Shown here: positions 1 through 46,665 of the stretch, one piece after another | Layout of the letters: the number at the start of each line of letters is the position of its first letter | How positions within the stretch are numbered: the stretch's first letter is position 1 | Translations under genes and position numbers: made by a program | Notes under the pieces: generated by a model | Databases searched by the model: none | The model's input: only the letters and a program-made list of their open reading frames with translations | Told to the model about the DNA's origin: nothing | Virus record (IMG/VR): IMGVR_UViG_3300027782_000027 | Location: 1 to 64,000 of that record | Reading direction: 5' to 3' (one strand) | DNA length: 64,000 bases

Positions 1-6
1 TAAGTA

Positions 7-381
7 GTGATGATGTTTTATTGGACAAGGCAGTTTAAATCGGGACACTATCCACCTAATGTATTAGAAAAAATATGGGTAATGGCAACACCTTTTTTCG
101 CAACTGCTGATTATACACCTGTTGAAGTTGATTGGTATGGATTAGAAGATGACTCAAAGAAACCTAATGTAGGAATATACGATACAAGTGGTGATGGTGA
201 TTATTTTGTGGAACTTACACATAATACACACAATGGTAACTATTTTTTTAATAGTGTTGATAATTTATTTGATTGGTATAATACGTTTTATTTACCAGGA
301 GTTTATGAAATAATCATGAATGATTTTATATCTGAAGTCCAACAAGACACAGATGAGAGACTTAGAGATAAAAATACTTAA
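7..381 (+). CDS. hypothetical protein (start uncertain, window edge)
   Basis: 124-aa ORF followed by hairpins and a terminator. Confidence 0.55.
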   Translation: MMMFYWTRQFKSGHYPPNVLEKIWVMATPFFATADYTPVEVDWYGLEDDSKKPNVGIYDTSGDGDYFVELTHNTHNGNYFFNSVDNLFDWYNTFYLPGVYEIIMNDFISEVQQDTDERLRDKNT

Positions 382-419
382 GATACGGACTTAGGACCGT
401 TGTAGTTTAGGCTACATTA

Positions 420-451
420 ACCCCATTGAATTCGCTACTCAGTGGGGTTTT
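420..451 (+). terminator. intrinsic terminator
   Basis: ACCCCATTGA...TCAGTGGGGT stem followed by T run, between convergent genes. Confidence 0.7.
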
Positions 452-1235
452 CATTTAAGACATCTTCTACCACTGGTGAATTACATGTACGCGATGTGTG
501 TGTTGTAGTTACCTTATGATTTAGGACTTCTCCCACCTCACTGGGAACAATAGTGGGTCTACAATTGGTTTTAGTTACCTTATGATTTAATACCTTCTCC
601 ACCATATTCGGAAACGGCGGTGTATTGAATGATATTGTAGATACCTTATGATTTAATACATCTTCCACCTTTATTTCCAACTGAAAACAAGAATGACCTG
701 TTGTAGATACCTTATGATTTAATACATCTTCTACCTTATGTCCAACCCATCCATCATACCCATCAGTTGTAGATACCTTATGATTTAATACATCTTCCAC
801 CAAGAAACCTTCGTTACCGATATCGTTTTGCGTTGTGGATACCTTATGATTTAATACCTCTTCCATCTTCACACTTGCCTTCATGCCCATGTAAACAGTT
901 GTAGATACCTTATGATTTAATACCTCTTCCACCCCGCCTGTAATCATGGTCTGCGCCATGGCAGTTGTGGACACCTTATGATTTAATACCTCTTCCACCC
1001 AAGAAGCAAGTATTGGTTCAAAATCTTTGGGTTCCAATGAGAAAATAGTAAAAAAACTATTAAAGAAATAATATCTCCACCACAAACGACCACTCTTTTC
1101 AAATTCAAAATACCAATGTTCCTTTTCTCGGTCAATTAACCATATAGAATCTTTATATGGGATTATCTCCGTATTACCTAATTCTTTGTATAGTTGTTTG
1201 AATACGACCTGTTTTAATCTATCAGTTACTTTCAT
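435..1235 (-). CDS. repeat-array protein 1: N-terminal domain of about 80 aa plus (VEEVLNHKVSTT + unique 10 aa) x8
   Basis: ORF translation; paralog of 1222-1899, 1883-2521 and 9657-10385. Confidence 0.85.
   Translation of the reverse strand: MKVTDRLKQVVFKQLYKELGNTEIIPYKDSIWLIDREKEHWYFEFEKSGRLWWRYYFFNSFFTIFSLEPKDFEPILASWVEEVLNHKVSTTAMAQTMITGGVEEVLNHKVSTTVYMGMKASVKMEEVLNHKVSTTQNDIGNEGFLVEDVLNHKVSTTDGYDGWVGHKVEDVLNHKVSTTGHSCFQLEIKVEDVLNHKVSTISFNTPPFPNMVEKVLNHKVTKTNCRPTIVPSEVGEVLNHKVTTTHTSRTCNSPVVEDVLNENPTE
502..999. CRISPR. CRISPR-like array 1, in frame inside a CDS; 8 full 36-nt repeats plus a degenerate one ending at 471; 30-nt spacers
   Basis: Consensus GTTGTRGATACCTTATGATTTAATACMTCTTCCACC at 502, 568, 634, 700, 766, 832, 898, 964; exact 66-nt period; no cas genes in the window. 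Confidence 0.55.
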
Positions 1236-1899
1236 TTTCTTTTTTGTTGTTTAATACCTCATCTACCGATTCCGCTCTTCTTGAGATGTATTCTTCCGTT
1301 TTGGATACCTTACGATTCAATATATCTTCCACCAAAAAGTTTCCTTCACCTACGTCACGGACTGTTTTGGATACCTTACGATTCAATACCTGTTCCACCG
1401 CAATGGTTACAGTTCCTGCCTTTCCTGCAGTTGTGGATACCTTACTATTCAATACCTCTTCCATCATATCATTCGAAGTGAAACTGAATTGCTGAGTTGT
1501 GGATACCTTACTATTCAATACCTCTTCCACCCCTTGCTTAAAACTTCTGAAACGGCTTGCAGTTGTGGATACCTTACTATTCAATACCTCTTCCACCCCG
1601 CCATCCATGACATATTGAGTGCTGTCAGTTGTGGATACCTTACTATTCAATACCTCTTCCACCCAAGATGAAATAATTGGTTCAAAATCTTTGGACTCCA
1701 AAGAGAAAAAAGAAAAGAAAGATTTGAAATAATCATATCTCCAATATAAACATCCACTTTCAGTTAGTTGGAAATACCAGTATTTTTCTTCTCTATCAAT
1801 AAACCAATAACTGTATTGGGTAGGGATAATTTCCACATTACCTAATTCTTTGTATAGTTGTTTGAATACAACCTGTTTTAATCTATCCGTTACTTTCAT
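1222..1899 (-). CDS. repeat-array protein 2 (6 unique 10-aa cassettes)
   Basis: ORF translation; repeats VEEVLNSKVSTT. Confidence 0.85.
   Translation of the reverse strand: MKVTDRLKQVVFKQLYKELGNVEIIPTQYSYWFIDREEKYWYFQLTESGCLYWRYDYFKSFFSFFSLESKDFEPIISSWVEEVLNSKVSTTDSTQYVMDGGVEEVLNSKVSTTASRFRSFKQGVEEVLNSKVSTTQQFSFTSNDMMEEVLNSKVSTTAGKAGTVTIAVEQVLNRKVSKTVRDVGEGNFLVEDILNRKVSKTEEYISRRAESVDEVLNNKKENESN
1298..1663. CRISPR. CRISPR-like array 2, in frame; 6 full repeats plus a degenerate one ending at 1267
   Basis: GTTGTGGATACCTTACTATTCAATACCTCTTCCACC-type repeats at 1298, 1364, 1430, 1496, 1562, 1628; 30-nt unique spacers. Confidence 0.55.
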
Positions 1900-2521
1900 T
1901 TTCTTTTTTATTGTTTAATGCCTTTTTCACCCAAGCACTATTTAATACTTCTTCCACTGACCTTTCGGAAAACAAGGAATTATTTTTAGTTGTTGATACC
2001 CTACTATCTAATACTTTTTTTACCTTTCTTTTTTGGGCGGCGTCTACTTCAAAAGTTTCGGATACCTTATGATTTAAGACCTCTTCCACCCACTTTGCTG
2101 TTACAGTAGTTTTCTCTTCAGTTGTGGATACCTTATGATTTAATACCTCTTCCACCAGAGGAAATTCGTCAATTACAAACATTTTTGTTGTGGATACCTT
2201 ATGATTTAATACCTCTTCCACCTTTCGCGAGAAGTAACCGAGCTTATTGCCTGTCGTGGATACCTTATGATTTAATACCTCTTCCACCCAAGAAGATATT
2301 ATTGGTTCAAACTCACTCTGTTCCAAAGAAAAAATGCTGAAAAACGATGGGAAGAATGAGTATCTCCAAAATAAACATCCATCTTTAGACAACTGAAAAT
2401 ACCAATAACAATTTTCCCTATCAATGAACCATACAGAGTCTTTATACGGGATTATCTCCACATTACCTAACTCTTTGTATAGGTGTTTGAATATGAGTTG
2501 TTTTAGCTTATCTGTAACCAT
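1883..2521 (-). CDS. repeat-array protein 3 (5 unique cassettes); start moved to ATG at 2521
   Basis: ORF translation; TATCTTTG element just upstream of the ATG; start matches paralogs. Confidence 0.85.
   Translation of the reverse strand: MVTDKLKQLIFKHLYKELGNVEIIPYKDSVWFIDRENCYWYFQLSKDGCLFWRYSFFPSFFSIFSLEQSEFEPIISSWVEEVLNHKVSTTGNKLGYFSRKVEEVLNHKVSTTKMFVIDEFPLVEEVLNHKVSTTEEKTTVTAKWVEEVLNHKVSETFEVDAAQKRKVKKVLDSRVSTTKNNSLFSERSVEEVLNSAWVKKALNNKKENESNG
1989..2288. CRISPR. CRISPR-like array 3, in frame; 5 repeats plus a degenerate one ending at 1958
   Basis: Repeats at 1989, 2055, 2121, 2187, 2253; 66-nt period. Confidence 0.55.
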
Positions 2522-2546
2522 AAGCACAAAGATAATAAAAAATTAC

Positions 2547-3086
2547 TTAATAAACAGGTCCTGATTTGAATTTTTTACATACAGGTATATTAGCTGTGGT
2601 TTTAAACTCTCTTGGAATTGCTTCACGTATTTTACCCCATTTATTATACGTATAAACATATTTGTCAATATCATTATATAAATCACCTTTAAATTTATAA
2701 TATGAGTTTACAAATTGACAAAAATCTTTGGCGGTTGAGATAGTTTTTATTGCTGGAGTTATTAAATCTTCTGAAGATGTTGTTTGAATATCTTTTTTTA
2801 CTTGATTTGCAGCATAATTTCCATCCCAAGCGTATGTGTCGGCTTTTGAATCATATCTACACCAATTAAATGAATTTACAACAATTTCATAGTCTTCAAA
2901 TCTTTCTTCACAAAGCCTAATACTTTCAGTCCCCGAATCAGGAAGGCTTGCTCCAAGTGATAATCCCATATCATTGAGACTCCCTATTAGGTTACCTGCT
3001 GGTACTCCCCCAATAGTTTGTTCTTTTATTACACGTTTTATTAAATTAATTAATTCAGATTCGGTTAGTCTAATTTTTTTACTCAT
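2547..3086 (-). CDS. hypothetical protein with KKIRLTESEL leader
   Basis: N-terminal leader shared with about 10 other ORFs. Confidence 0.75.
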   Translation of the reverse strand: MSKKIRLTESELINLIKRVIKEQTIGGVPAGNLIGSLNDMGLSLGASLPDSGTESIRLCEERFEDYEIVVNSFNWCRYDSKADTYAWDGNYAANQVKKDIQTTSSEDLITPAIKTISTAKDFCQFVNSYYKFKGDLYNDIDKYVYTYNKWGKIREAIPREFKTTANIPVCKKFKSGPVY

Positions 3087-3112
3087 TTTGTTTTTTTTAT
3101 ATAAATATATTA

Positions 3113-3451
3113 TTAATTTTCAGACGGTAATTTTAACGACCATTGGGAGCTCATTATCTTGTTGGACATTTGACCCTCCAAATTTAGTTTATTCTTAACC
3201 CATTGCCCAACAATTCTGGTGGATTGATAACTGTTAAGAGAAAAGAAGGAAGAAATGGCTTCAATTAAACCTTTATAGATAAAACACAATTCATTATTGG
3301 AATGATTACCACCATATTGAATTTGAGCTGACTCATCTTCAGGATATGAAAAATATATACTGGCACCAGTTTTAGTTATAATGAAATCCTGACTATCAAG
3401 ATACCTGAATATTACTTTATCTAATTGTGATTCTGTGATTAAATATTTCAT
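3113..3451 (-). CDS. MKYLITE-family small protein
   Basis: MKYLITESQLDKVIFRYLD...FFSL...WV paralog family. Confidence 0.8.
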   Translation of the reverse strand: MKYLITESQLDKVIFRYLDSQDFIITKTGASIYFSYPEDESAQIQYGGNHSNNELCFIYKGLIEAISSFFSLNSYQSTRIVGQWVKNKLNLEGQMSNKIMSSQWSLKLPSEN

Positions 3452-3819
3452 GATAATGTTATACTTCTAACTGATTTAACCTCATAGTCAGGAAAGAACT
3501 CATTAAATACATCTGACATAATGAATTTGCCGTGAACTAACCAAATGGGATGAGGAAACGCTGTACCATATATATCGTCAAAGTTCCTATTATAGTATAA
3601 ATCGCCACTTGGTTTATTATAAACCATTACAGCGTTTTGGTCACTATCAAATAAGTTAAGTCTTAAATCATTTTCATCATATGAATTAACCAAATTTGCA
3701 AAATAAGGAACCAATTTAGGTTTCAGTCTTTCGTATTGTTCCGTATATTCAGAATCTCTCCAAGTTCTTTCAAGTTCAGATATTAATTTATGTTGTGACT
3801 CGGTAATAATATACTTCAT
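3448..3819 (-). CDS. MKYIITE-leader small protein
   Basis: shared leader; upstream TATTTAT motif. Confidence 0.8.
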   Translation of the reverse strand: MKYIITESQHKLISELERTWRDSEYTEQYERLKPKLVPYFANLVNSYDENDLRLNLFDSDQNAVMVYNKPSGDLYYNRNFDDIYGTAFPHPIWLVHGKFIMSDVFNEFFPDYEVKSVRSITLS

Positions 3820-3851
3820 GTAATAATAAATATAATTATATTTATTATATT

Positions 3852-4175
3852 ATGAACCTACAAGAGAATATAAAAAAAGTATTAAGGGAAGAAACAGATT
3901 TTTCACCACAGTTCAAAAGAAGACTGAATAGATTTAAATCGTTTGTATGGGATAACAATGTAACTAATTATCCATGTGATTTTGAAAACTTTGAAGCGTT
4001 CATGCGTGGTATACAACATGAAATTATGGACATGATTACAGATGGTTCTGATACCGATGGTCCATTGTCTGAGTGGTTAAAATATAAAGATGGTGTTACG
4101 TATGTAGAAAACTACATGAGGGATGACTTAGAAAAGTTTTATAATAAAGAATGTGTTGATGTCTTATACGTATAA
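3852..4175 (+). CDS. MNLQENIKKVLREE-leader small protein
   Basis: leader shared with 5643 and 9201. Confidence 0.8.
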   Translation: MNLQENIKKVLREETDFSPQFKRRLNRFKSFVWDNNVTNYPCDFENFEAFMRGIQHEIMDMITDGSDTDGPLSEWLKYKDGVTYVENYMRDDLEKFYNKECVDVLYV

Positions 4176-4520
4176 ATCAAGAAATTGTTCCACTGTTATT
4201 CCAAGACCTGAGATACCAAATAAATTCATAAATTCAGATTCATCATATCTATCACATCCGTTATTGATAATCCAAGGAATATCTGTAACATAATTCATCT
4301 GATAAAGTATATCATAACTATTATCTAATTTTATAAGATACATCGGACCATAGTTATCCATACTAAGTCTTCTTCGTAAACCATCATCAGTAATACAGTT
4401 ATCAAAAGACATCATTACATCAATCAAATCTGGGTCAATCTCCACACGACCCGTAAGGTCAATATTAAATTTGTCTTTAATTAATGTTTTTAATTTTGAT
4501 TCAGTGATTAAGTATTTCAT
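4164..4520 (-). CDS. MKYLITE-leader small protein
   Basis: shared leader. Confidence 0.8.
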   Translation of the reverse strand: MKYLITESKLKTLIKDKFNIDLTGRVEIDPDLIDVMMSFDNCITDDGLRRRLSMDNYGPMYLIKLDNSYDILYQMNYVTDIPWIINNGCDRYDESEFMNLFGISGLGITVEQFLDLYV

Positions 4521-4536
4521 TATATATAAATATTAG

Positions 4537-4947
4537 TTAACAGTTACCTGTATTATAAACCTCAATATTGTGACCTCTAATTAGACCTCCACCGAACTGA
4601 TATAAAGCCTTAGCAATAGTATCTCTATACACACTCCTATTACCTTCTTCATACATATACCTCCCCACATTTTCAGGTTCCGGCTTAGGTATGTAGACAA
4701 CCAAATCCATAGAGTTACGAGTGGGGATGATATTATAACTACAATATCTTAAGACGGTTGAAATATCATTTTCAAATATAGTTTTTGTTAGAAAGATAAT
4801 ATCTTCTCTTTTTCCTTCAAGACCAATCTCATCAATAATATCTTCAGGTTCCTTATCAGTCATTTTACACAGAGTACGCATACCAAATTTCTCTAATAAG
4901 GGTTTAAGAGTTTTGCTATATTGATTCTCAGTGATTAAGTATTTCAT
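4537..4947 (-). CDS. MKYLITE-leader small protein
   Basis: shared leader. Confidence 0.8.
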   Translation of the reverse strand: MKYLITENQYSKTLKPLLEKFGMRTLCKMTDKEPEDIIDEIGLEGKREDIIFLTKTIFENDISTVLRYCSYNIIPTRNSMDLVVYIPKPEPENVGRYMYEEGNRSVYRDTIAKALYQFGGGLIRGHNIEVYNTGNC

Positions 4948-4955
4948 ATATTATA

Positions 4956-5285
4956 TTAGTTATTTACTCTTATCCATACATTCGGTGCGGGTTTAGCCCC
5001 ACGGACTTGTACAACTATTACTTTGAGGGTATTTTCAACCCATCTACGGATAAGTTCCATGGAATCGGAGATACCCAAAGAAAAGAAAGAGGCCACTTCA
5101 TTAATTAAACTATTAACAATGTAACACCAGCCACTAATTTTATCATATCTAATCTCAGCGTATTCATCATCTTCTAAATTAACTAAAAATATAGTTGCAC
5201 CCTTTTTAATCTGAATAAAGTTCTTAATATCCAAATATCTAAAGATTACTCTGTCTAATTGTGATTCGGTGATAAGGTATTTCAT
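4956..5285 (-). CDS. MKYLITE-family small protein
   Basis: close paralog of 8520-8816. Confidence 0.8.
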   Translation of the reverse strand: MKYLITESQLDRVIFRYLDIKNFIQIKKGATIFLVNLEDDEYAEIRYDKISGWCYIVNSLINEVASFFSLGISDSMELIRRWVENTLKVIVVQVRGAKPAPNVWIRVNN

Positions 5286-5288
5286 ATA

Positions 5289-5609
5289 TTAATATTCAAA
5301 AAACATAACATCAACATCAAATACTTTACTAAACCAATCAGAAATGAATTTACCTGATTGCTCTTTATCAAGTGGATACATGGATGAAAACTTATCTAAA
5401 AAAGATTCATCAATAAATAATCTACCATCACTATGGTCAAACTCCATTAAAATAAAAAAATCAGGGCCTCTTTCCTGGCTATATATATTAATGAAATCAC
5501 TATCTGATGTTCTATCATAATCTAATATATTATTTAACTCAGATATCATTAAATTATTTATTACCGATTTGGCTTTATCTAATTGTGATTCGGTGATAAG
5601 ATATTTCAT
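5289..5609 (-). CDS. MKYLITE-leader small protein (start moved to 5609)
   Basis: shared leader begins at codon 8 of the track ORF. Confidence 0.8.
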   Translation of the reverse strand: MKYLITESQLDKAKSVINNLMISELNNILDYDRTSDSDFINIYSQERGPDFFILMEFDHSDGRLFIDESFLDKFSSMYPLDKEQSGKFISDWFSKVFDVDVMFFEY

Positions 5610-5642
5610 ATAGAATATAAATATAATCATATTTATAATAAT

Positions 5643-5972
5643 ATGGACTTAAAAGAATCTATAAAAAGAATACTGAGGGAAGAACTATCGGCGAGAATTA
5701 AAAGAAGACTTTCTAATGATGAAATGGAAAATGAGTTTCTTGAATCTTTTGAAGGTGCTTATCGTCTTACAAAAGACAGAAAGGTTTTAAGTTCACATTT
5801 TTTAGATGAGTTAGTCTACACAACAATAACCTTTATGATGGATGGGGTACATTGGAGATTTGTTAGCACATTACCTGAAGATGAATTTTGGTATGATGAT
5901 ATACACCAAGGGTTAGAAAATCATTATAGAAAAAGAATTACACGGATGTATAATGAAAGAAAAGGTTTTTAA
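5643..5972 (+). CDS. MDLKESIKRILREE-leader small protein
   Basis: shared leader; similar to 3852-4175. Confidence 0.8.
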   Translation: MDLKESIKRILREELSARIKRRLSNDEMENEFLESFEGAYRLTKDRKVLSSHFLDELVYTTITFMMDGVHWRFVSTLPEDEFWYDDIHQGLENHYRKRITRMYNERKGF

Positions 5973-5975
5973 AGA

Positions 5976-6254
5976 TTAATTAGAGTTTAAGAATTTAAGT
6001 AACGCTCCAATATATTTGGAACGTTTATCATAGAATTCAGTATCATCATCATATTGAAAAAACTCTTCACCTCTATGTCTATCAATGAACTTTTCAATTA
6101 ATTCATAAGCGTAATCATCTCTGTCGGCGGAATCTTCAAAATCTTCTTCATCCATAATGTAGTTATAATCATCCCTAAGTGCTTCCAATTCATCCATTGT
6201 AAACCTCCTAAGTAAAAATACTTCTAACTGTGATTCTGTAATTAAGTATTTCAT
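5976..6254 (-). CDS. MKYLITE-leader acidic small protein
   Basis: shared leader. Confidence 0.8.
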   Translation of the reverse strand: MKYLITESQLEVFLLRRFTMDELEALRDDYNYIMDEEDFEDSADRDDYAYELIEKFIDRHRGEEFFQYDDDTEFYDKRSKYIGALLKFLNSN

Positions 6255-6267
6255 TATTCGTTAACCA

Positions 6268-6621
6268 TTAATCTGTAACTATTAATCTGTAATCATATGG
6301 ACCATCCCAAATCGTACTATTACTAATACCCAAAGTATTATTAACCCATTCTTTGATTATATCCAAACAATCCGATTTACCAATGGGTAATAAGGTAGAT
6401 AAATCCTCAGTCAAACTACGATTTACAAACACCCAATTCCTAACTTCACCAAAGGCGTTGTTAACATAAACACTAATCTGTGATTGACTATCTGACTCAC
6501 TGTTTAAGAAATATATATAATTGTTGAATCTCTTCTTGTTGTCATATATCACAAAGTCCTGAATATCAAGATACTTAAAGATTACTTTCTCTAATTTTGA
6601 TTCGGTGATAAGGTATTTCAT
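6268..6621 (-). CDS. MKYLITE-family small protein
   Basis: paralog family motif. Confidence 0.8.
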   Translation of the reverse strand: MKYLITESKLEKVIFKYLDIQDFVIYDNKKRFNNYIYFLNSESDSQSQISVYVNNAFGEVRNWVFVNRSLTEDLSTLLPIGKSDCLDIIKEWVNNTLGISNSTIWDGPYDYRLIVTD

Positions 6622-6633
6622 TATATATAAATA

Positions 6634-7002
6634 TTAGTTAAGGGGTATTCCCAATAACGAATGAATAAGGATGTCTTTGTTAGACGGTATTTTTAACCAA
6701 GACTGGGACATCAAAGTAGCCTTGGTGGTATTTGTAACCTTCATTTGTAGGGTATTCCCAACCCACCTACCAATAGCTGATTTAGAATCAGATTCGTCCA
6801 AAGAAAATAACGATGAGATGTTCTTGATTAATTCGGGACTTATTACACAACCAAAATTACCATTTTTGATTTGAGCATATTCATCATCTTCAGAGTTAAC
6901 GAAGTATACTAAAAGACCTATTTTAATTTGAATAAAATCTTGATGGTTCAAGTAAATAAAGATTGCTCTATCTAATTGTGATTCTGTAATTAAGTATTTC
7001 AT
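6634..7002 (-). CDS. MKYLITE-family small protein (start moved to 7002)
   Basis: leader begins at codon 15 of the track ORF. Confidence 0.8.
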   Translation of the reverse strand: MKYLITESQLDRAIFIYLNHQDFIQIKIGLLVYFVNSEDDEYAQIKNGNFGCVISPELIKNISSLFSLDESDSKSAIGRWVGNTLQMKVTNTTKATLMSQSWLKIPSNKDILIHSLLGIPLN

Positions 7003-7109
7003 TATATATAAATACAAAGATACACATAAAACTGAACAATACATATTGGGTTAATAATTTAATAAGAATAAGATAATATGGTTTGAGGTCGTTTTTAATA
7101 CTTATTATT

Positions 7110-7817
7110 ATGGATTTATCAAAGTTTTTAACCATAGTAATCCCTTGTAAGAACGAGGGCAAGATAATTGAACAAACGTTGTCCTTATTAAACTTTCAAA
7201 AGGGAATACAAGATGTTAGAGTTATTGTTTGTGATTCATCGGATGATGATTATACATCCTATTCTTTGGAAAATAGGAGAACAGATTATTTTAATCTACA
7301 GATTATTTCAGGAGGACTTCCGTCTGTTGCAAGAAATAAGGGAGCAGAGAATGTGGAAACACCTTATGTTCTATTTTTGGATGCTGACATATTCTTATTG
7401 GATTTTGACATATTAAACAATTGTATATGGGAGTTCTTATTACATAATACAGATTTGATTACATGTAAGGTAAGGTCAACGACAGGTGAGTATAATAGTA
7501 TATTCAGATTGTTTGACACCATACAAAAGGTATTTAAACCAATCACGCCATTTTGTCTTGGTGGGTTTATGATGGTTAAGAAAGAAGTATATGATACAAT
7601 CGGCGGGTTTGATGAAAACGCAAGAGTTGCTGAGGATTATCTATTCTCCAAACAAGTTAAACCAAGTAAGTTTTATATCATGAATACAACAGTATTCACA
7701 AGTCCAAGAAGGTTCAAACAGAAAGGTGTGTGGTATATGTTAAAACTTATGGTTAGTTCATTCTTCAACAGGAACAATAAAAATCATTTTGAGGATGATA
7801 AAGGATACTGGGAATGA
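7110..7817 (+). CDS. glycosyltransferase family 2
   Basis: IVIPCKNE, ARNKGA, LFLDAD (DxD) and GGFDE...ED motifs. Confidence 0.9.
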   Translation: MDLSKFLTIVIPCKNEGKIIEQTLSLLNFQKGIQDVRVIVCDSSDDDYTSYSLENRRTDYFNLQIISGGLPSVARNKGAENVETPYVLFLDADIFLLDFDILNNCIWEFLLHNTDLITCKVRSTTGEYNSIFRLFDTIQKVFKPITPFCLGGFMMVKKEVYDTIGGFDENARVAEDYLFSKQVKPSKFYIMNTTVFTSPRRFKQKGVWYMLKLMVSSFFNRNNKNHFEDDKGYWE

Positions 7818-8527
7818 ATAATTGGAAAACGATAATCATGAGTGACTTACACTTAGGAGCGAGACAATCACAGACAGATAAGATAATAAGTTTCTTGGAT
7901 AATAACACAACGGAAAAACTAATACTGAACGGTGATATAATAGATGGTTGGGCTCTCAAAGGTAATGGTAAATGGACAAAGGATTGTACCAAGATATTCA
8001 GGAAGTTCATGAAGATGTCCGAGAAGAATACAAAGGTAATTTATATAAGAGGAAACCATGATGACTTCTTAAAAGATTTTATTCCATTTAAATTAAACAA
8101 CATCAGGATTGTAAGGAAGTATGTTCATACAGGGATAGATAATAGAAAGTATTTTTGTTTTCACGGAGATGTATTGGATTTTGTTATAATGGAAGCAAGA
8201 TGGCTTGCAGTAATCGGTGGATGGTCATATGATATTGTCATTAAGTTTAATACTCTATATAACAAAATAAGAAAGTGGTTTAACTTACCATATCATTCAT
8301 TAGCTAACACAATAAAACAATCTGTAAAAGGGGCGATTAACTTTGTATCTGATTTTGAGGATAACGCGAAAGGTTTAACAAAACAAAAGGGATATGATGT
8401 TGCGGTGTGTGGACATATTCATCACCCGAAGATAGAGAATGACTATATGAACTCAGGAGACTTTTGTGAGAACTCTACATGTCTTGTAGAAGATTACAAT
8501 GGGGTGTGGAAAATAATTACTATCTAA
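7814..8527 (+). CDS. UDP-2,3-diacylglucosamine hydrolase-like (LpxH family) metallophosphoesterase
   Basis: SDLHLG, GDIID, GNHD, HGD, GHIH, NSGDF calcineurin-like motifs; translationally coupled to the GT2 gene. Confidence 0.85.
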   Translation: MNNWKTIIMSDLHLGARQSQTDKIISFLDNNTTEKLILNGDIIDGWALKGNGKWTKDCTKIFRKFMKMSEKNTKVIYIRGNHDDFLKDFIPFKLNNIRIVRKYVHTGIDNRKYFCFHGDVLDFVIMEARWLAVIGGWSYDIVIKFNTLYNKIRKWFNLPYHSLANTIKQSVKGAINFVSDFEDNAKGLTKQKGYDVAVCGHIHHPKIENDYMNSGDFCENSTCLVEDYNGVWKIITI

Positions 8528-8816
8528 CTATAACTTCTTTAACTCTTCTATCCAAAGTATTCTCAACCCATCTAGCAATAACATATTTAGAATTATCAAA
8601 TTCTATAGAGAAGAAATCTTTAATCTCATCAATTAACCCAAAAATTATTACACACTCACCACCTCTAAAGTATTCGATTGATGAGTCGATATATTCACCA
8701 CCTTCAGAATTGGCGAAGTAAATTGCACTCCCTCTTTTAATCTGAATAAAGTTCTTAATATCCAAATATCTAAAGATTACTCTATCTAATTGTGATTCTG
8801 TTATAAGGTATTTCAT
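8520..8816 (-). CDS. MKYLITE-family small protein
   Basis: paralog family motif. Confidence 0.8.
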   Translation of the reverse strand: MKYLITESQLDRVIFRYLDIKNFIQIKRGSAIYFANSEGGEYIDSSIEYFRGGECVIIFGLIDEIKDFFSIEFDNSKYVIARWVENTLDRRVKEVIVR

Positions 8817-8832
8817 TATATATAAATATTAG

Positions 8833-9168
8833 TTAGAAGGGTAACCTCAATGTCAAACTTCCACTGTTTGTAATGGACATTGATTTTTCGTAACTGTATT
8901 TTACTTGTAATGTATCACCAATCCATCGAACAATAATCTTCTCAGAATCAGAATCACTCAAAGAAAATAATGATGAAATATCGTCAACTAATTCATAATT
9001 CATAAAAGAAAAATTATCACTCATATCGTATCTGATTTGACAATACTTATCACCTTCTGAATTAACAAAGTATATAGTGTCTTTATCCTCAACCTGAATA
9101 AAATCTTGATTGTCAAGATACCTAAAGATTACTTTTTCTAATTTAGATTCTGTGATAAGATATTTCAT
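8833..9168 (-). CDS. MKYLITE-family small protein
   Basis: paralog family motif. Confidence 0.8.
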   Translation of the reverse strand: MKYLITESKLEKVIFRYLDNQDFIQVEDKDTIYFVNSEGDKYCQIRYDMSDNFSFMNYELVDDISSLFSLSDSDSEKIIVRWIGDTLQVKYSYEKSMSITNSGSLTLRLPF

Positions 9169-9200
9169 ATGATAATAAATATAATTATATTTATAATATT

Positions 9201-9656
9201 ATGAACCTACAACAAAACATAAAAAGAATATTAAGGGAAGAATACACCGTAAAACAGATGAAGTTATTAACTATCGCAAGTCAGGTGGGGTTACTAAAGA
9301 CAGGAGAAATGTTCGGTGGTATAGAATACCTTATAAATGTGTTAGGTGATGAGTTCCTTACAACAAACAATAAGGTTAAGATTATTAGGGAAGTAGTAGA
9401 AACAACCGATTATGAATATATCACACTAATGGATATGAATGAAAACCCAATAGTTCTCAAGGTTGGAGACGGTAAACTTTCACAAATAGAAATGATAAAT
9501 AAAGAAGATGTTACAGTGTTCCATTATGGTGGATATGAATACTCACAAGATTTAGGTGAAAGTTATATATCTTATGAAGAACTACCAAAAGATGTATTAG
9601 ATGATATCTTTAATATGGTATTAGATTTCTATACAGATACTTTAGAGAATAAGTAA
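9201..9656 (+). CDS. MNLQQNIKRILREE-leader protein
   Basis: shared leader. Confidence 0.8.
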   Translation: MNLQQNIKRILREEYTVKQMKLLTIASQVGLLKTGEMFGGIEYLINVLGDEFLTTNNKVKIIREVVETTDYEYITLMDMNENPIVLKVGDGKLSQIEMINKEDVTVFHYGGYEYSQDLGESYISYEELPKDVLDDIFNMVLDFYTDTLENK

Positions 9657-10385
9657 TTATTGATTTAAGACCTGTTCCATCACATAATTCATTACAGACA
9701 TTTCTACATCCGTTGTACATACCTTATTATTTAATACCTCTTCCACTCCTCTTGTGAAAGGTCCAGAATATGCTTCCATTGTAGATACCTTATGATTTAA
9801 TACCTCTTCTACCTCAATTCTTCCAACGTAATCAAGTGAATCGGTTGTGGATACCTTATGATTTAAGACCTCTTCCACCAATGAATGTTCGGGGTATTTG
9901 AGAATGGTAGTTGTAGACACCTTAACATTATGACTTAATACATCTTCCACCTTCCAAGGAACACGAACTTTAACATCGCACGTTGTGGATACCTTATGAT
10001 TTAATACATCTTCCACCATCATGCTTTCAACACCGCTACCTGTCACGGTTGTGGATACCTTATGATTTAAGACCTCTTCCACCACGTAGTTCCTAAGCCC
10101 TATAGGGCGATATGTTGCGGATACCTTATGATTTAAGACCTCTTCCACCCAAGAAGATAGAACAGGACAAAAATCATCCGAACTCATGGAGAATATTTGA
10201 AAAAACGAATTAAAAAAATCGTATCTCCACCATAAAGTACCTGACTCATCAAGTTCAAAGTACCAATGTTTATTATCCCTATTAATGAACCATATAGACC
10301 CATTATAAGGAATAATCTCACAATCACCTAACTCTCTATATAGGTGTTTAAAAATAATTTGTTTTAATCTATCTGTAATAACCAT
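9657..10385 (-). CDS. repeat-array protein 4 (7 unique cassettes)
   Basis: paralog of 435-1235; TATATTTG element just upstream of the ATG. Confidence 0.85.
   Translation of the reverse strand: MVITDRLKQIIFKHLYRELGDCEIIPYNGSIWFINRDNKHWYFELDESGTLWWRYDFFNSFFQIFSMSSDDFCPVLSSWVEEVLNHKVSATYRPIGLRNYVVEEVLNHKVSTTVTGSGVESMMVEDVLNHKVSTTCDVKVRVPWKVEDVLSHNVKVSTTTILKYPEHSLVEEVLNHKVSTTDSLDYVGRIEVEEVLNHKVSTMEAYSGPFTRGVEEVLNNKVCTTDVEMSVMNYVMEQVLNQ
9712..10149. CRISPR. CRISPR-like array 4, in frame; 7 repeats (one with a 6-nt insertion) plus a degenerate one ending at 9681
   Basis: Repeats at 9712, 9778, 9844, 9910 (42 nt), 9982, 10048, 10114; all spacers 30 nt. Confidence 0.55.
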
Positions 10386-11198
10386 AGAGCAAATATAGTA
10401 AGAAATTATGAACTAAACAAACTCATTCCCCCATTCCACTATCGTGTCGTTCCATTCCCCTAGCGGGTCATTACACTAATGGGTTCATTCATTTGTTTAC
10501 TTCTTAATTTCCCCTATTGTATGAATCTATAATTAACGTACAACACTAATCTATAATAATCCCCCATAATGAAAGACATATAGTATGAGGGGACATAACA
10601 TATTACTGTTAATGGTATTGTACCCATCGGGATAATGAAATACCCTAAAGGGTATATAATATGATATGAGTATACCTGTTAGGGTATAAAATATATGGTG
10701 GAATGTGAAGGGGACAATGTCCTTTATAGGGAACATAACCCTACAGGGTTATCCCTTATATAACACATTATGTCCCACTTTTTACCACCACTATAATTGT
10801 CCATATCATGTGTCTATATGGTAAGGGGAAATCTTAAAAACCTCATTATATTCGGGTCAAGAACCCCGTTGAAGACACTATAAAATACACTTTTCGTTGA
10901 AGGATTTAAACAACTAAAGTCTGTCCACGCCACTTTATTGTTACATCCTATTTTTAGCTGGAAAATGTATATAGTTAAAAAAACCCTTCTCACACTATCA
11001 GGAGGACCACTTTTTTCACTTTTCATATAACCAAAAACCCCTCTCACATATATGTCAGTGGTAAAAAGTGGGAAATAAAAACTTAACATAAACTATACAT
11101 TATACCATATATTTATTATGATTATTAGGTCTAAAAGTGGTCAAGGGGATTATCCCCCATCTGACACTCAACTGACATTTTGACAAAATCAAGAAAAA

Positions 11199-28907: not shown

Positions 28908-30695
28908 ATGAGGAATTTATTGACTGAAGTTAGTAAGATGAAAAACATGATGGGTTTACAAGAGGCAGATAAGCCAAAATATAACCCTGAAGTAAAATAT
29001 CTTGTTTCAGTTTTAAAAGATAATAAAGTGTATAGTGCTCAAATCCAAAAATTCATTAATAGGATTAATGAATTTTCAAAAGACGGTTTAGTTGATTTTG
29101 GATTAATTACCCGAGGTATTTTAAAAACTTTAAAGTTAAAAGGTAACAAAGATATTAATGTTTTTGAATTTTTCAAACAACTAACTAAATCATTAGAAAA
29201 AAGAAAAAATAAAAAAGAAGTTGTTAATCCTGAAGAAGAACCATCAATTTTAGATAAAGACATTTATAAAAAAGAAATATTTTTTCTACAGGTTGAACTT
29301 TTAAAGTTACAGGAATGGTTAAAACAAACAGGTAAAACTGTTATAATTGTTTTTGAAGGAAGAGACTCGGCAGGTAAAGGTTCTACAATTAAGAAATTCA
29401 CTGAAAATTTAAATCCAAGATATTATAAAGTTATTGCTCTTGGTATCCCAACACCTGATGAAAGAAAGAACTGGTGGGATAGATACAGTAATCAAATTGA
29501 AAAAGGTAAGATAAACTTCTTTGATAGAAGTTGGTACAATAGAGGATTAGTTGAACCTGTAATGGGTTATGGTTCATCAGAAGAGTACGAAGACTTTATG
29601 GATAATGTTCAGGATTTTGAAGAATCATTGGTTGTTGATGGGGATTACTTATTTAAACTTTGGTTCTCAATAGATAAAGAAACTCAAGCTAAGAGATTTG
29701 ATTTCAGACAGAAGTCACCATTGAAATATTGGAAGTATTCTGAGAATGATGAGAAGATGCAAGATGTGTGGGAAAAGTTTACAGAGTATAAACAAAAACT
29801 TTTTGATAAAACATCAACCGTAAACCATCCGTGGGTTATTTTGGACGCTAACGATAAAAAGATTTCAGGTTTAAACTCAATTAGATACGTTTTACAAAAT
29901 ATTCCTTATACAAATAAGGATGAGGATGTTTTAAACAAAGACTTCCCTGAAGCGATGACGGTTTTAAAACCAAATATTAATGAGCAATCAGTTTTTGATT
30001 TCTATAACCAATTAACGGGTAAATCACAACAAAAACAAGAACCAAATTTTATGGATACATGGTCATCTATGGGACAACCAAAAGACCAAATGACACCAAA
30101 TTCAGGAGGTGCTGTTGATGCAGTTAAAGCTGGTGCTAAAAAAATTGCAAAAATTGCAAAAGAAAAGTCATCAAATTCAAATACAGTTGGGGTCGGAACA
30201 GTTTCAGATAAACTTGTAAATTTTGTAGCGAATATTGAGTTTTTTGTTAAGTGTGTTTATGACGACGCTAAAGGTGGTAAATGTGTGAGAAAAGAACCTG
30301 ATTGTTGTTTAAGAGGAAAATCCCCAACTCCCGGAGCAAAGGCAACAATAGGTTATGGTACAACGTATTATCCTGGTGGAATACCTGTTAAACCTAATGA
30401 CCCTGACATTACTGAAACAAGAGCAAAAGAATTAATGAGAAATACATTAAACAAAAATGCAAAAAAAATACTTAATTTATACCCAAACTTAAATCAACAA
30501 CAATTAGATGCGATGGCTTCATTATGTTACCAAATGGGACCTGATGGTTGTACAACAGAAGCTCCAAATTTATCAGCAGCCTTAAAAAGTAATCCAAATA
30601 ATTTACAAAATGTTGGACAACATTTTGTTGATTTCCCATTCAAAGACAGAAGAGAAAAAGAGTGGAAAATTTATAGTCAAGGAATTTATTCTTAA
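28908..30695 (+). CDS. ppk2: polyphosphate kinase 2 fused to a C-terminal GH24 lysozyme-like domain
   Basis: FEGRDSAGKG and FDRSWYNR (PPK2); E...VYDD, TIGYG, LNQQQLDAMASL.Y..G, RR.KE (phage lysozyme). Confidence 0.85.
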   Translation: MRNLLTEVSKMKNMMGLQEADKPKYNPEVKYLVSVLKDNKVYSAQIQKFINRINEFSKDGLVDFGLITRGILKTLKLKGNKDINVFEFFKQLTKSLEKRKNKKEVVNPEEEPSILDKDIYKKEIFFLQVELLKLQEWLKQTGKTVIIVFEGRDSAGKGSTIKKFTENLNPRYYKVIALGIPTPDERKNWWDRYSNQIEKGKINFFDRSWYNRGLVEPVMGYGSSEEYEDFMDNVQDFEESLVVDGDYLFKLWFSIDKETQAKRFDFRQKSPLKYWKYSENDEKMQDVWEKFTEYKQKLFDKTSTVNHPWVILDANDKKISGLNSIRYVLQNIPYTNKDEDVLNKDFPEAMTVLKPNINEQSVFDFYNQLTGKSQQKQEPNFMDTWSSMGQPKDQMTPNSGGAVDAVKAGAKKIAKIAKEKSSNSNTVGVGTVSDKLVNFVANIEFFVKCVYDDAKGGKCVRKEPDCCLRGKSPTPGAKATIGYGTTYYPGGIPVKPNDPDITETRAKELMRNTLNKNAKKILNLYPNLNQQQLDAMASLCYQMGPDGCTTEAPNLSAALKSNPNNLQNVGQHFVDFPFKDRREKEWKIYSQGIYS

Positions 30696-46174: not shown

Positions 46175-46665
46175 AAAGACTTTTGATATTCAGTCCAAAC
46201 TTTTTGTAAAGATTGACCCACAGAATCCGAAAATATAGAAGGTTCTGTGGGTTTTTTCATTAACCTCATATTGGTTTCACCCAATAACTTGTCCCCTTTC
46301 TTCGAATTACACGTTATACAACACGTAACTAGGTTATCCCATGTGTTACCCCCACCTTTTGATTTAGGGATGATATGGTCTATTGTAAGGTCTTTTTTAC
46401 TACCACAATAAACACAAGCGTTATGGTCACGTCTCATGATTCTATGACGATTAACACGAATACGTCTACGAGTGATTGAAACGTAGTTTAAAAGTCTAAT
46501 AATAACGGGTCTAACGAGTTTTATAATACCGCACACGACTGGCTCGTCAGATGATTTTACAACCTCTGCCTTCCCTTTATAGACTAAATTAAACCCACGA
46601 TTAAACGATGTTACATTTAAGGGACTATAATCTGAATTAAGAACTAATACTCCATTCATATTCAT
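46171..46665 (-). CDS. HNH endonuclease (McrA-like)
   Basis: RD...CVYCG....LTIDHIIPKSKGG..TWDNLVTCC..CN..KG. Confidence 0.92.
   Translation of the reverse strand: MNMNGVLVLNSDYSPLNVTSFNRGFNLVYKGKAEVVKSSDEPVVCGIIKLVRPVIIRLLNYVSITRRRIRVNRHRIMRRDHNACVYCGSKKDLTIDHIIPKSKGGGNTWDNLVTCCITCNSKKGDKLLGETNMRLMKKPTEPSIFSDSVGQSLQKVWTEYQKSF

Follow-up and report, generated by a model that had tools for sequence, protein, structure and literature searches.

CRISPR-like repeat-spacer arrays within protein-coding genes of a freshwater jumbo phage

Four minus-strand paralogous genes of a freshwater jumbo phage were found to end in repeat-spacer arrays that have the geometry, the register and part of the sequence of Bacteroidota type VI-B CRISPR arrays, yet are read through as protein, which raises the untested possibility that CRISPR-type spacer insertion can write new peptide cassettes into a gene. 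The arrays lie in the window analysed here, a 64,000-nt stretch (positions 1 to 64,000) of the 240,759-bp IMG/VR record IMGVR_UViG_3300027782_000027. A first-pass annotation of the window had described the arrays and proposed that a CRISPR-adaptation-like integrase, of the host or the phage and acting in trans, inserts 30-bp pieces into these genes. The arrays were confirmed as described, whereas the proposed interpretation was only partly supported. The genes, designated A to D, and their relatives in the window are listed in Table 1.

Table 1. Coordinates of the array-bearing genes and related features in the window
Feature	Position	Strand	Description
Gene A	435-1235	-	ORF
Array of gene A	435..999	-	8 modules (36-bp repeat + 30-bp spacer) plus a terminal partial repeat and the stop codon
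N-terminal domain of gene A	999..1235	-	Last helix runs into the first repeat (W|VEEVLNHKV); fold taken from the model of paralog D
Gene B	1222-1899	-	ORF
Array of gene B	1222..1663	-	6 modules plus a degenerate terminal repeat; repeat variant AGT (Ser) at codon 7; gene end overlaps the start of gene A
N-terminal domain of gene B	1663..1899	-	
Gene C	1883-2521(2527)	-	ORF
Array of gene C	1883..2288	-	5 modules plus degenerate terminal repeats; gene end overlaps the start of gene B
N-terminal domain of gene C	2288..2521	-	ATG at 2521; an upstream GTG at 2527 is also open
Gene D	9657-10385	-	ORF
Array of gene D	9657..10149	-	7 modules, one of them with a 42-nt repeat variant (VEDVLSHNVKVSTT)
N-terminal domain of gene D	10149..10385	-	Modelled at pLDDT ~95 (helix, four strands, two helices)
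Array-less paralog	3113..3451	-	MKYLITESQLD...; matches the N-domain HMM over its full length (E 7e-6)
Array-less paralog of the N-domain family	4956..5285	-	Uses ordinary codons at the position equivalent to the repeat
Array-less paralog of the N-domain family	8520..8816	-	
Array-less paralog of the N-domain family	8833..9168	-	E 1e-10
Presumed array-less paralog	6634..7044	-	Shares the MKYLITESQLD start and WV.NTL helix motif; not among the N-domain HMM hits; carries one solitary repeat-like unit (VGNTLQMKVTNT), 23/36 identical to the F. columnare VI-B repeat in a +1 register

Each gene encodes a conserved N-terminal part of ~79 aa, within a ~86-aa N-domain with a predicted fold, followed by a mostly disordered tail of 66-nt units. 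Each unit comprises a near-identical 36-nt repeat (GTGGAAGAGGTATTAAATCATAAGGTATCCACAACT, read as VEEVLN[H/S]KVSTT) and a unique 30-nt block, giving 26 spacers in total. In frame, the 260 spacer codons contain 0 stops, against a mean of 16.9 in 20,000 shuffles (P(0)=0), whereas the other five frames hold 6-20 stops. The repeat was found only at these four arrays in the whole record. To test the claim that 36/30-nt geometry is typical of type II-C and VI-B arrays, real arrays were examined; Flavobacterium VI-B arrays next to Cas13b have 36-nt repeats and 30-nt spacers in 78% of units, and the F. covae II-C array has a period of 66. Structure searches with the N-domain model returned nothing above noise in PDB, AFDB clusters, VIA-align or the ESM Atlas, and in BFVD returned only uncharacterised proteins of uncultured phages that look like the same family. 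The family, one of small proteins of freshwater jumbo phages, is undescribed, large (468 clusters at 50% identity) and abundant in lakes.

At the DNA level the blocks are offset by -1 nt from the codon register used in the first-pass annotation. Over 139 unique units, the base before each repeat, which is the third base of a variable codon, is G in 97-99%, and the third base of the last repeat codon has 1.93 bits, as variable as spacer. The blocks are therefore 36+30 bp with sharp edges, and the same holds in subfamilies with quite different repeats. The last spacer residue cannot be coded by NNG in only 3% of 331 unique peptides, against 30-34% at other positions. Of 177 adjacent repeat pairs, 176 are 30 bp apart and the exception is 27; ten wider gaps span degenerate repeats, and no gap is a non-multiple of 3. 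In this the arrays fit the general form of a CRISPR array, near-identical direct repeats of 23-47 bp alternating with unique spacers of uniform length.

In that register and in the sense orientation, the phage repeat is 23-24/36 identical, at offset 0, to VI-B repeats that lie next to Cas13b, where VI-B repeats of different genera share 25-27/36. It is 36 nt long, begins with GGTG where VI-B repeats begin with GTTG, ends in ACAAC as they do, and matches 16 of the 21 columns that are invariant among the VI-B repeats, a likeness that leaves it undecided whether it should be counted as a VI-B direct repeat. An empirical genome-wide null puts >=23/36 at about 2e-5 per position. Given the peptide, the codons used give 23 of a possible 24 matches where 16.3 are expected (P~1e-4), and an independently retrieved repeat gives P 2.5e-3, whereas controls give P 0.3-0.6; the test is calibrated on shuffles. 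The repeat uses the rare codons GTG, GAG, AAG and TCC, whereas array-less paralogs use common codons and score 11-18/36. The RNA hairpin of VI-B repeats, a closing stem plus a distal stem-loop, is not kept. Real VI-B repeats fold at -8.6 to -10.9 kcal/mol for three of four and at -4.7 for the fourth, with z about -3 for the two tested against shuffles, whereas the phage repeats give z of -1.5 to +1. No stem is shared among subfamilies; a GTGGA/TCCAC stem exists only in the VEEVLN[HS]K subfamily, without covariation, and a conserved repeat hairpin was rejected. An Rfam scan of positions 1-11000 at E<=10 gave no CRISPR-DR family, only chance snoRNA-like hits.

The spacers are unrelated to one another. 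Pairwise distances are bimodal, at 1-6 or >=12 differences with none at 7-11, and the bulk lies near the shuffle expectation, slightly shifted toward similarity. A few old spacer families do show graded divergence (e.g. FEVDAAQKRK and FEINASQKRT), and no adjacent duplicates were seen in the arrays listed. Hypermutation or a diversity-generating retroelement (DGR) was rejected, there being no intermediate distances, no reverse transcriptase (RT) and no template copy in the genome. Individually the spacers are conserved and look constrained as peptides (dN/dS ~0.26). Their composition is coding-like in this frame and differs from stop-filtered random DNA (P 1e-6 to 1e-9), with a GC content of ~40-43%, against 32% for the phage and 34% for real Flavobacterium spacers. 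Spacer GC3, considered as proof of foreign origin, weakened to ~34-35%, against 29% in the N-domains, once the fixed last G was removed.

Gradual divergence of spacers by point mutation among orthologs, without whole-spacer gains or external matches, had been set out in advance as the pattern that would make the array an ordinary protein tandem repeat. This was not what was seen, because orthologous arrays differ by whole-unit gains, losses and replacements. A test for polarised spacer gain had also been proposed. Private spacers sit at mean relative position 0.35 and universally shared ones at 0.78 (P=6e-6), so that variation is biased toward the 5', N-domain side, and repeats degenerate toward the 3' end. 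However, internal insertions and replacements also occur, the same spacer is found at different positions and with different flanking repeat variants, and no leader is recognisable, comparison by eye with Flavobacterium VI-B leaders showing no evident similarity, so these data do not settle whether the arrays grow from a leader end. New units in B arrays carry the AGT variant of B. Turnover is moderate, not fast: a 99.2%-identical relative has identical arrays, and differences appear at 88-97% backbone identity. In contigs from sequencing runs, the only joint reported inside an array was a 38-nt replacement at 1397/1370 in run X2, equal to the EYLHPRGNLE spacer of relatives; otherwise contigs break at the repeats and show other spacers at the repeat borders, some from other arrays that share the repeat.

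The search for adaptation genes, proposed beforehand as a check, was extended from the window, where none had been noted, to the rest of the record. No Cas1, Cas2, Cas13b or RT match was found in the whole record, the Cas9 model giving only a sub-threshold HNH hit at 46279-46395, and no Cas1 or Cas13b was found in three complete relatives of 309-322 kb. The absence of a Shine-Dalgarno signal and the GC content of 32% fit a Bacteroidota host, although the host genome is not known, and ClpC homologs, cluster names and an encoding contig gave no host name. The exact repeat pattern had no match in 185,579 species genomes, and thus neither a prophage copy nor an identical host repeat was seen there. 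Cas13b was found in 3 of 401 sampled Bacteroidota genomes.

No protospacer was found in the phage's own genome plus ~0.5 Mb of related loci, in 50,697 phage records, in 401 Flavobacteriaceae genomes, in five related jumbo phage genomes, in IMG/VR for six young spacers, or in 241 million metagenome records for one spacer. In F. columnare, spacer acquisition has a TTTANNNNN / NNNNNTAAA motif. Only 7 spacers were scanned against the large environmental sets, and most environmental spacers are unmatched in general, so that a derivation of the spacers from foreign DNA is neither borne out nor ruled out by these searches. That none of the 26 is self-derived is awkward if a host integrase samples DNA during infection.

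What the analysis itself demonstrates is the family, its architecture of N-domain and 66-bp modules, and the resemblance of the repeat to VI-B repeats in length, register, orientation and about two thirds of its bases; how the modules arise is inferred, and what they do is open. The reading favoured here, tentatively and with less than even confidence, is that the modules are products of CRISPR-type spacer integration. In this view a Cas1-Cas2 integrase supplied by the host acts in trans, inserts a 30-bp piece at a repeat border and duplicates the 36-bp repeat. In F. columnare the II-C and VI-B repeats are both 36 bp and share the leader-distal ...ACAAC end, and the cas1-less VI-B array is filled by II-C Cas1-Cas2 in trans (PMC8092290). 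Because 36+30 = 66 = 22 codons, each event would keep the reading frame; selection would then remove insertions that carry a stop, a 29- or 31-nt length or an intolerable peptide, and homologous recombination between the near-identical repeats, needed in any case to explain the departures from strict polarity, would delete and reshuffle modules within and between phages. In favour of this reading are the off-codon block edges, the uniform length, the similarity to real CRISPR repeats, the mutually unrelated spacers, the polarised module turnover, the array-specific repeat variants and the Bacteroidota-like host setting. Against it are the lack of an integrase and of protospacers, including self-derived ones, the coding-like and GC-richer spacer composition, the old protein motif in the repeat, the departures from strict polarity, the slow turnover and the rarity of Cas13b. 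The benefit to the phage could be more copies of a docking helix, variable peptides or a sink for the host's integrase. It is held that the integration is or was real, but no claim is made as to the source of the inserts, and a peptide library, as had been suggested, is pure inference. A more far-reaching version, considered less probable than not but a real possibility, is that a host adaptation complex, most likely a Bacteroidota type II-C Cas1-Cas2, recognises VI-B-like repeats that the phage keeps inside its genes and writes 30-bp captures there as heritable peptide cassettes, a CRISPR-type 'memory' stored and expressed as protein by the virus, or used by it as a frame-neutral sink for the integrase.

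The main rival, somewhat less favoured but quite possible, is an ordinary tandem-repeat protein in which a conserved 12-aa helix motif alternates with 10-aa linkers, the arrays changing only by unequal crossing-over and gene conversion between DNA-identical repeats, within a genome and between co-infecting phages. Linker diversity would have built up slowly in a huge phage population, and the likeness to CRISPR repeats would be coincidence or at most a relic. The repeat is indeed also an old protein motif, kept in distant members with other DNA and with linkers of 8-25 aa, and the first repeat is homologous to the last helix of the domain that array-less paralogs share. Some members carry the array between the N-domain and a conserved C-terminal domain. 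The exchange of spacers between positions and repeat variants, the graded families, the purifying selection and coding-like composition of the spacers, the moderate turnover and the lack of cas genes and protospacers all fit this reading. However, it offers no source for the hundreds of mutually unrelated 30-bp blocks, and does not explain the invariant G at a third codon position of a variable residue, the free third base of the last repeat codon, the near-absence of 27- or 33-bp linkers in the young arrays, the absence of tandem duplicate spacers, or the rare-codon encoding that leans toward VI-B repeats in the correct register and strand.

Three further readings are considered very unlikely. 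The arrays could be a sink for the host's spacer integrase, sharing the mechanism favoured above, with the many repeat copies on replicating phage DNA (25-26 per genome) diverting Cas1-Cas2 from the host's own arrays and the frame-neutral 66-bp design making the hits harmless. The preserved repeat ends fit, as does the 36+30 = 66 = 22-codon geometry, and insertions are not confined to the first repeat, as expected from type II arrays for targets without a proper leader, but the spacers look selected as peptides, none derives from the phage itself, turnover is slow and there is no experimental hint. The arrays could instead act as an RNA decoy whose transcripts mimic Cas13b pre-crRNA and soak up or misload the host's Cas13b, as a type VI version of the RNA anti-CRISPRs (Racrs), with the reading frame secondary. 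Phages use repeat mimics as RNA anti-CRISPRs (PMC10651486), the likeness to VI-B repeats is in the crRNA-sense orientation, and contigs from RNA libraries cover parts of these genes, which is weak evidence. However, the repeat structure is not kept, the sequence lies inside an ORF kept open far beyond chance and joined to the N-domain, the spacers are constrained as peptides, and a decoy needs no unique spacers. The suggestion that the array doubles as a crRNA-like precursor fails because the VI-B hairpin is lacking; expression as, or processing into, small RNAs was not measured. Least likely is a multi-core peptide precursor cut at the 12-aa motifs to release different 10-mers, as in RiPP precursors with hypervariable cores between flanks identical in nucleotide sequence. 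Conserved flanks, hypervariable yet individually conserved cores and a disordered tail fit, but the off-codon block edges and the likeness to VI-B repeats are not explained. Clustering of the neighbours in 60 loci showed no protease or modifying enzyme as a conserved neighbour, only two small paralog families co-occurring widely, plus a GT2 and a metallophosphoesterase in ~12 loci; as most neighbours have unknown function, this does not decide whether dedicated processing enzymes are present.

CRISPR arrays are known as non-coding memory read out as RNA, whereas this cosmopolitan family of lake jumbo phages carries arrays with CRISPR geometry, register and repeat likeness that are read out as protein. 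If an integrase really writes them, this would be the first case of spacer acquisition creating protein sequence, a new route to protein diversification, a new form of virus-host interplay at the adaptation step and the first type VI-like repeat mimic on a virus. Even under the mundane reading, the arrays are a clear example of cassette evolution whose source of new cassettes is unexplained, and a trap for CRISPR finders and for spacer-based host prediction.

Among known systems, the closest are the type VI-B arrays of Flavobacterium filled in trans by the type II-C Cas1-Cas2 (Hoikkala et al. 2021, PMC8092290), which share the 36-bp repeat starting with G and ending ...ACAAC, the 30-bp unique and mutually unrelated spacers, the variable 5' side, conserved 3' side and degenerate terminal repeats, and the lack of cas1 or cas2 next to the array. 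The phage arrays differ in lying inside a protein-coding gene kept open in one frame, in the absence of Cas13b, hairpin, recognisable leader and detected protospacers, in the GC-richer, coding-like spacers and in the exchange of modules between arrays. Virus-borne orphan mini-arrays and solitary repeat units (Racrs; PMC10651486, PMC6858448) are likewise CRISPR-repeat-like sequences carried by viruses without cas genes, the likely purpose being interplay with host CRISPR, but they are short, non-coding and promoter-driven, keep the repeat structure, have spacers that, where present, match rival viruses, and none was reported for type VI; here the arrays have 5-8 units and are translated. DGRs also diversify a defined stretch of a phage protein gene, but need an RT and a template repeat and change adenines only, whereas the spacers here are not A-mutated copies of one another. 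Cyanobactin (patE-type) precursor genes carry in-frame variable cassettes between flanks conserved at the DNA level, and the origin of new cassettes is unexplained there as well, but they are bacterial, sit next to processing enzymes, have few cassettes and show no CRISPR-like geometry or repeat sequence. False CRISPRs, tandem repeats inside protein genes (Zhang & Ye 2017, PMC5294841), also lie in coding sequence without cas genes nearby and would be flagged by CRISPR finders, but they are defined by non-diverse, mutually similar 'spacers', whereas the spacers of the phage arrays are as unrelated as in real arrays, and the block edges are off-codon.

The analyzed sequence is the first 64 kb of a 240,759-bp IMG/VR virus record, which is linear, about 82% complete and 32% GC. 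It belongs to a tailed jumbo phage that encodes a T4-type large terminase, a ClpC-like ATPase, and endolysin/amidase-domain proteins, one of them fused to a PPK2 kinase. Only 2.9% of its ORFs have a Shine-Dalgarno-like 4-mer upstream, compared with 9% in random 17-mers, and the upstream regions are G-poor; together with the low GC content this fits a Bacteroidota host, although this is an inference. The lineage is common in lake metagenomes, and relatives of the ClpC-like ATPase at 95-100% identity occur on many lake metagenome contigs of up to 306 kb, so that the phage lineage appears to be widespread and abundant in lakes. The coordinates of the features discussed are collected in the table.

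Coordinates of the array genes and of other features discussed in the text. Positions are those of the 64-kb sequence, except in the last row.
Position	Strand	Feature
435-1235	minus	Gene A (8 spacers)
1222-1899	minus	Gene B (6 spacers)
1883-2521	minus	Gene C (5 spacers)
9657-10385	minus	Gene D (7 spacers)
1222-1235 and 1883-1899		Overlaps of the tandem genes C, B and A
2547-9656		Genome end packed with two families of small paralogs
3852-4175, 5643-5972, 9201-9656	plus	Members of the second paralog family (start MNLQENIKKVLREE)
6634-7044 (unit at about 6727-6762)		Presumed array-less paralog with one solitary repeat-like unit
7083-8527		Family 2 glycosyltransferase and calcineurin-like metallophosphoesterase
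9657-10149 (unit 4)		Gene D array, with a 6-nt insertion in one repeat
28908-30695		ORF fusing a polyphosphate kinase 2 domain with a phage lysozyme domain
46279-46395		Sub-threshold match to the HNH region of the Cas9 model
52874-54937		ClpC-like double AAA+ ATPase
60092-61837		T4-type large terminase
62005-62470 (ORF 61842-63122)		Long Thr/Pro-rich tandem repeats with periods of 18, 36 and 54 nt, in the ORF just downstream of the terminase gene
about 5084-6180 of L074 (Flavobacterium sp. J27)		VI-B array with hybrid repeat units

The first-pass annotation had described CRISPR-like repeat-spacer arrays inside protein reading frames, and this observation was confirmed. The four ORFs share an N-terminal part of ~79 amino acids and continue with 66-nt units, each made of a near-identical 36-nt repeat (VEEVLN[H/S]KVSTT) and a unique 30-nt block, giving 26 spacers in all. 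No stops are found in the 260 spacer codons, compared with a mean of 16.9 after shuffling, whereas the other five frames carry 6-20 stops. The repeat occurs nowhere else in the genome. The tandem genes C, B and A overlap by 14-17 nt, with the tail of one gene (NNKKENESN(G) and the stop) encoded by the same DNA as the MKVTD start of the next, which suggests that the tandem duplication unit included the overlap and that translation may be coupled.

These genes belong to a real protein family. Searches with protein A found 878 relatives, and a full scan of 1.84 billion representatives with protein D found 468 clusters, all from uncultured phage or metagenomes and none named. In an AlphaFold model of D, residues 1-86 are predicted at pLDDT ~95 (helix, four strands, two helices), with the last helix (residues 69-86) running into the first repeat, whereas most of the array falls below pLDDT 50. 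One repeat of the D array has a 6-nt insertion (VEDVLSHNVKVSTT) that is conserved in orthologs; residues 134-157, a strand from the preceding spacer plus the helix of this repeat, are modelled at pLDDT ~70-87, unlike the rest of the tail, although whether they dock on the N-domain was not examined. An HMM of the N-domain also matched, over its full length, four neighbouring array-less paralogs that start MKYLITESQLD. The second family of small paralogs at this end of the genome co-occurs with the first, the N-domain family, in 35 of 60 related loci, and neither has a known function. Distant members keep a repeat motif at protein level with other consensus sequences (VDEVLNCEVETT, LESVLNCGVTTT, VEDTIQNGVKHT), and the oldest-looking arrays have degenerate repeats and linkers of 8-25 amino acids. 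No fold relative or function was found for the family. In some members the array sits between the N-domain and a conserved C-terminal domain, so read-through is required.

To define the boundaries of the units at DNA level, an entropy profile was calculated over 139 unique units and showed two sharp edges. The third base of the last variable codon is G in 97-99% of units, whereas the third base of the last repeat codon (Thr ACN) has 1.93 bits, like spacer positions. The DNA repeat is therefore G+35 = 36 nt (GGTGGAAGAGGTATTAAATCATAAGGTATCYACAAC), and the variable block is exactly 30 nt, shifted by -1 from the reading frame. The same edges hold in every subfamily, whatever its repeat sequence. 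The last spacer residue is almost always one that NNG can encode, with only 3% exceptions compared with 30-34% at other positions. Of 177 adjacent repeat pairs, 176 are 30 bp apart (the exception is 27); the ten wider gaps span degenerate repeats, and no gap is a non-multiple of 3. Selection on a peptide would not fix the third base of a variable codon. The unit is defined at DNA level.

The repeat resembles type VI-B CRISPR repeats. A periodic pattern scan of 185,579 species genomes recovered arrays from Flavobacterium columnare, F. covae and Flavobacterium sp. J27, of which the F. columnare array and the J27 locus lie next to Cas13b (NF038190, E 7e-235 and 5e-89). An unbiased Cas13b search of 401 Bacteroidota genomes gave two more repeats. 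In the DNA-level register and the crRNA-sense orientation, the repeats of the 64-kb sequence are 22-24/36 identical to three of the four repeats and 17-19/36 to the fourth, with other subfamilies scoring 16-26; the best offset is 0, and reverse complements score 14-20. By comparison, VI-B repeats of different genera share 25-27/36, and the phage repeat matches 16 of their 21 invariant columns. A genome-wide empirical null gave >=23/36 at roughly 5 positions per 240-kb strand outside the arrays, about 2e-5 per position. One of the best few matches in the whole genome is a solitary repeat-like unit (VGNTLQMKVTNT) in a presumed array-less paralog, the DNA of which is 23/36 identical to the F. columnare VI-B repeat, but in a register shifted by +1. 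In the J27 array several units have the 5' two thirds of the repeat replaced by another sequence (AGTTCATGAATCT...TTTGAAAGGTATCTACAAC), and the F. covae array ends in a similar hybrid unit.

The resemblance extends to synonymous sites. With the peptide held fixed, the codons used give 23 of a possible 24 matches to the F. columnare and J27 repeats, where 16.3 are expected (P 1.5e-4 with uniform codon choice and 9e-5 with the phage's own usage). The independently retrieved repeats give P 2.5e-3 and 0.05, whereas the II-C repeat and three of the four reverse complements give 0.3-0.6 and one reverse complement gives 0.011; shuffled targets show that the test is calibrated. The repeat uses codons that are rare in this phage (GTG 8%, GAG 20%, AAG 22%, TCC 2%), whereas array-less paralogs use common codons at the same place and score 11-18/36. 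According to Hoikkala et al. (PMC8092290), the F. columnare II-C and VI-B repeats are both 36 bp and share the leader-distal GTTGT (= ...ACAAC) end, and the cas1-less VI-B array is filled by the II-C Cas1-Cas2 in trans. However, the phage sequence is not a working VI-B repeat. Real repeats fold into a closing stem plus a distal stem, with energies of -8.6 to -10.9 kcal/mol for three of the four and -4.7 for the fourth, and z of about -3 for the two tested against shuffles. The phage repeats do not fold in this way (z -1.5 to +1), no stem is shared among subfamilies, and Rfam gave nothing. The proposal in the first-pass annotation that the array possibly doubles as a crRNA-like precursor is therefore not supported.

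Gradual divergence of spacers among orthologs, without whole-spacer gains or external matches, had been named in advance as an outcome that would count against insertion; orthologous arrays differ by whole-unit gains, losses and replacements, not by gradual divergence. Modules were found to come and go as wholes. Relatives with 88-97% backbone identity carry the same C-B-A trio and the D gene, but with different module sets: one has an extra 5' unit in gene A (TLLGYYSNLL), two have EYGFVENTTK where the sequence examined has DGYDGWVGHK, and another has a unit inserted next to the last one. Private spacers sit toward the 5' side (mean relative position 0.35), whereas universally shared ones sit toward the 3' end (0.78; Mann-Whitney P=6e-6), and repeats degenerate toward the 3' end. 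A relative with 99.2% identity has identical arrays, so turnover is moderate. The same spacer can occur at different positions and with different flanking repeat variants, and recombination between repeats is therefore certainly at work.

Spacers are unrelated to each other but individually conserved. Among 161 unique 30-mers, pairwise distances are 1-6 or >=12, with none at 7-11, and among 331 unique peptides there is only a small excess of 5-7/10 identities, mostly old 3'-end spacers. Near-identical variants differ by 9 synonymous and 8 non-synonymous changes where 22% synonymous is expected, so dN/dS is ~0.26, albeit on small numbers. No neighbouring duplicates were seen in the arrays listed.

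To identify the source of the spacers, searches were carried out against the phage's own genome and ~0.5 Mb of related loci, 50,697 phage records, 401 Flavobacteriaceae genomes (where only low-complexity chance hits appeared), five related jumbo phage genomes, IMG/VR (for six young spacers), and 241 million metagenome records (for one spacer, which only recovered orthologous arrays). No match outside arrays was found in any of these, and the source is not known. Spacer composition is coding-like in this frame (G1 0.27, A2 0.34, T3 0.37) and differs from stop-filtered random DNA at P 1e-6 to 1e-9; GC content is 40-43%, compared with 32% for the phage and 34% for real Flavobacterium VI-B spacers. 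The search for cas1, cas2 and RT genes beyond the 64-kb sequence, which had been suggested at the outset, was also negative: no Cas1, Cas2, Cas13b, RT or true Cas9 is encoded by the phage, and three complete relatives of 309-322 kb lack Cas1 and Cas13b. A 170-aa ORF gave a sub-threshold match to the HNH region of the Cas9 model (23.6 bits against a cut-off of 100) and is most likely a homing-type HNH endonuclease, not a Cas9. No conserved nuclease or integrase neighbours the arrays. The glycosyltransferase and metallophosphoesterase between the arrays recur near the family in about 12 of 60 loci, although it is not known whether they act on the Ser/Thr-rich KVSTT motif.

Taken together, the interpretation in the first-pass annotation, that a CRISPR-adaptation-like integrase inserts 30-bp pieces into the gene, is partly supported. 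The off-codon, sharp 36+30 block structure, the likeness to VI-B repeats in register and strand (extending to synonymous sites), the mutual unrelatedness of the spacers and the polarity of variation point to modules made by a CRISPR-type integration reaction with a ruler, now or in the past. These properties were observed directly in the sequences, whereas the integration reaction and the host enzyme that would perform it are inferred. The missing integrase, the missing protospacers (especially self-derived ones), the coding-like spacer composition and the old protein-level motif argue for caution and keep an ordinary cassette-type protein repeat alive as a rival. Recombination between repeats is needed under either view. 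CRISPR-type integration by a host enzyme in trans, followed by recombination and selection for an open frame, is tentatively preferred, at somewhat less than even odds, whereas a protein repeat with no CRISPR enzyme ever involved is rather less likely but still a real possibility. The weight that is left falls to functional variants, namely an integrase sink, an RNA decoy or a peptide precursor.

No description of in-frame, CRISPR-repeat-like arrays in phage proteins turned up in the literature. Viral solitary repeats were reported for all CRISPR types except type VI. False CRISPRs in protein genes are defined by non-diverse spacers, which is not the case here.
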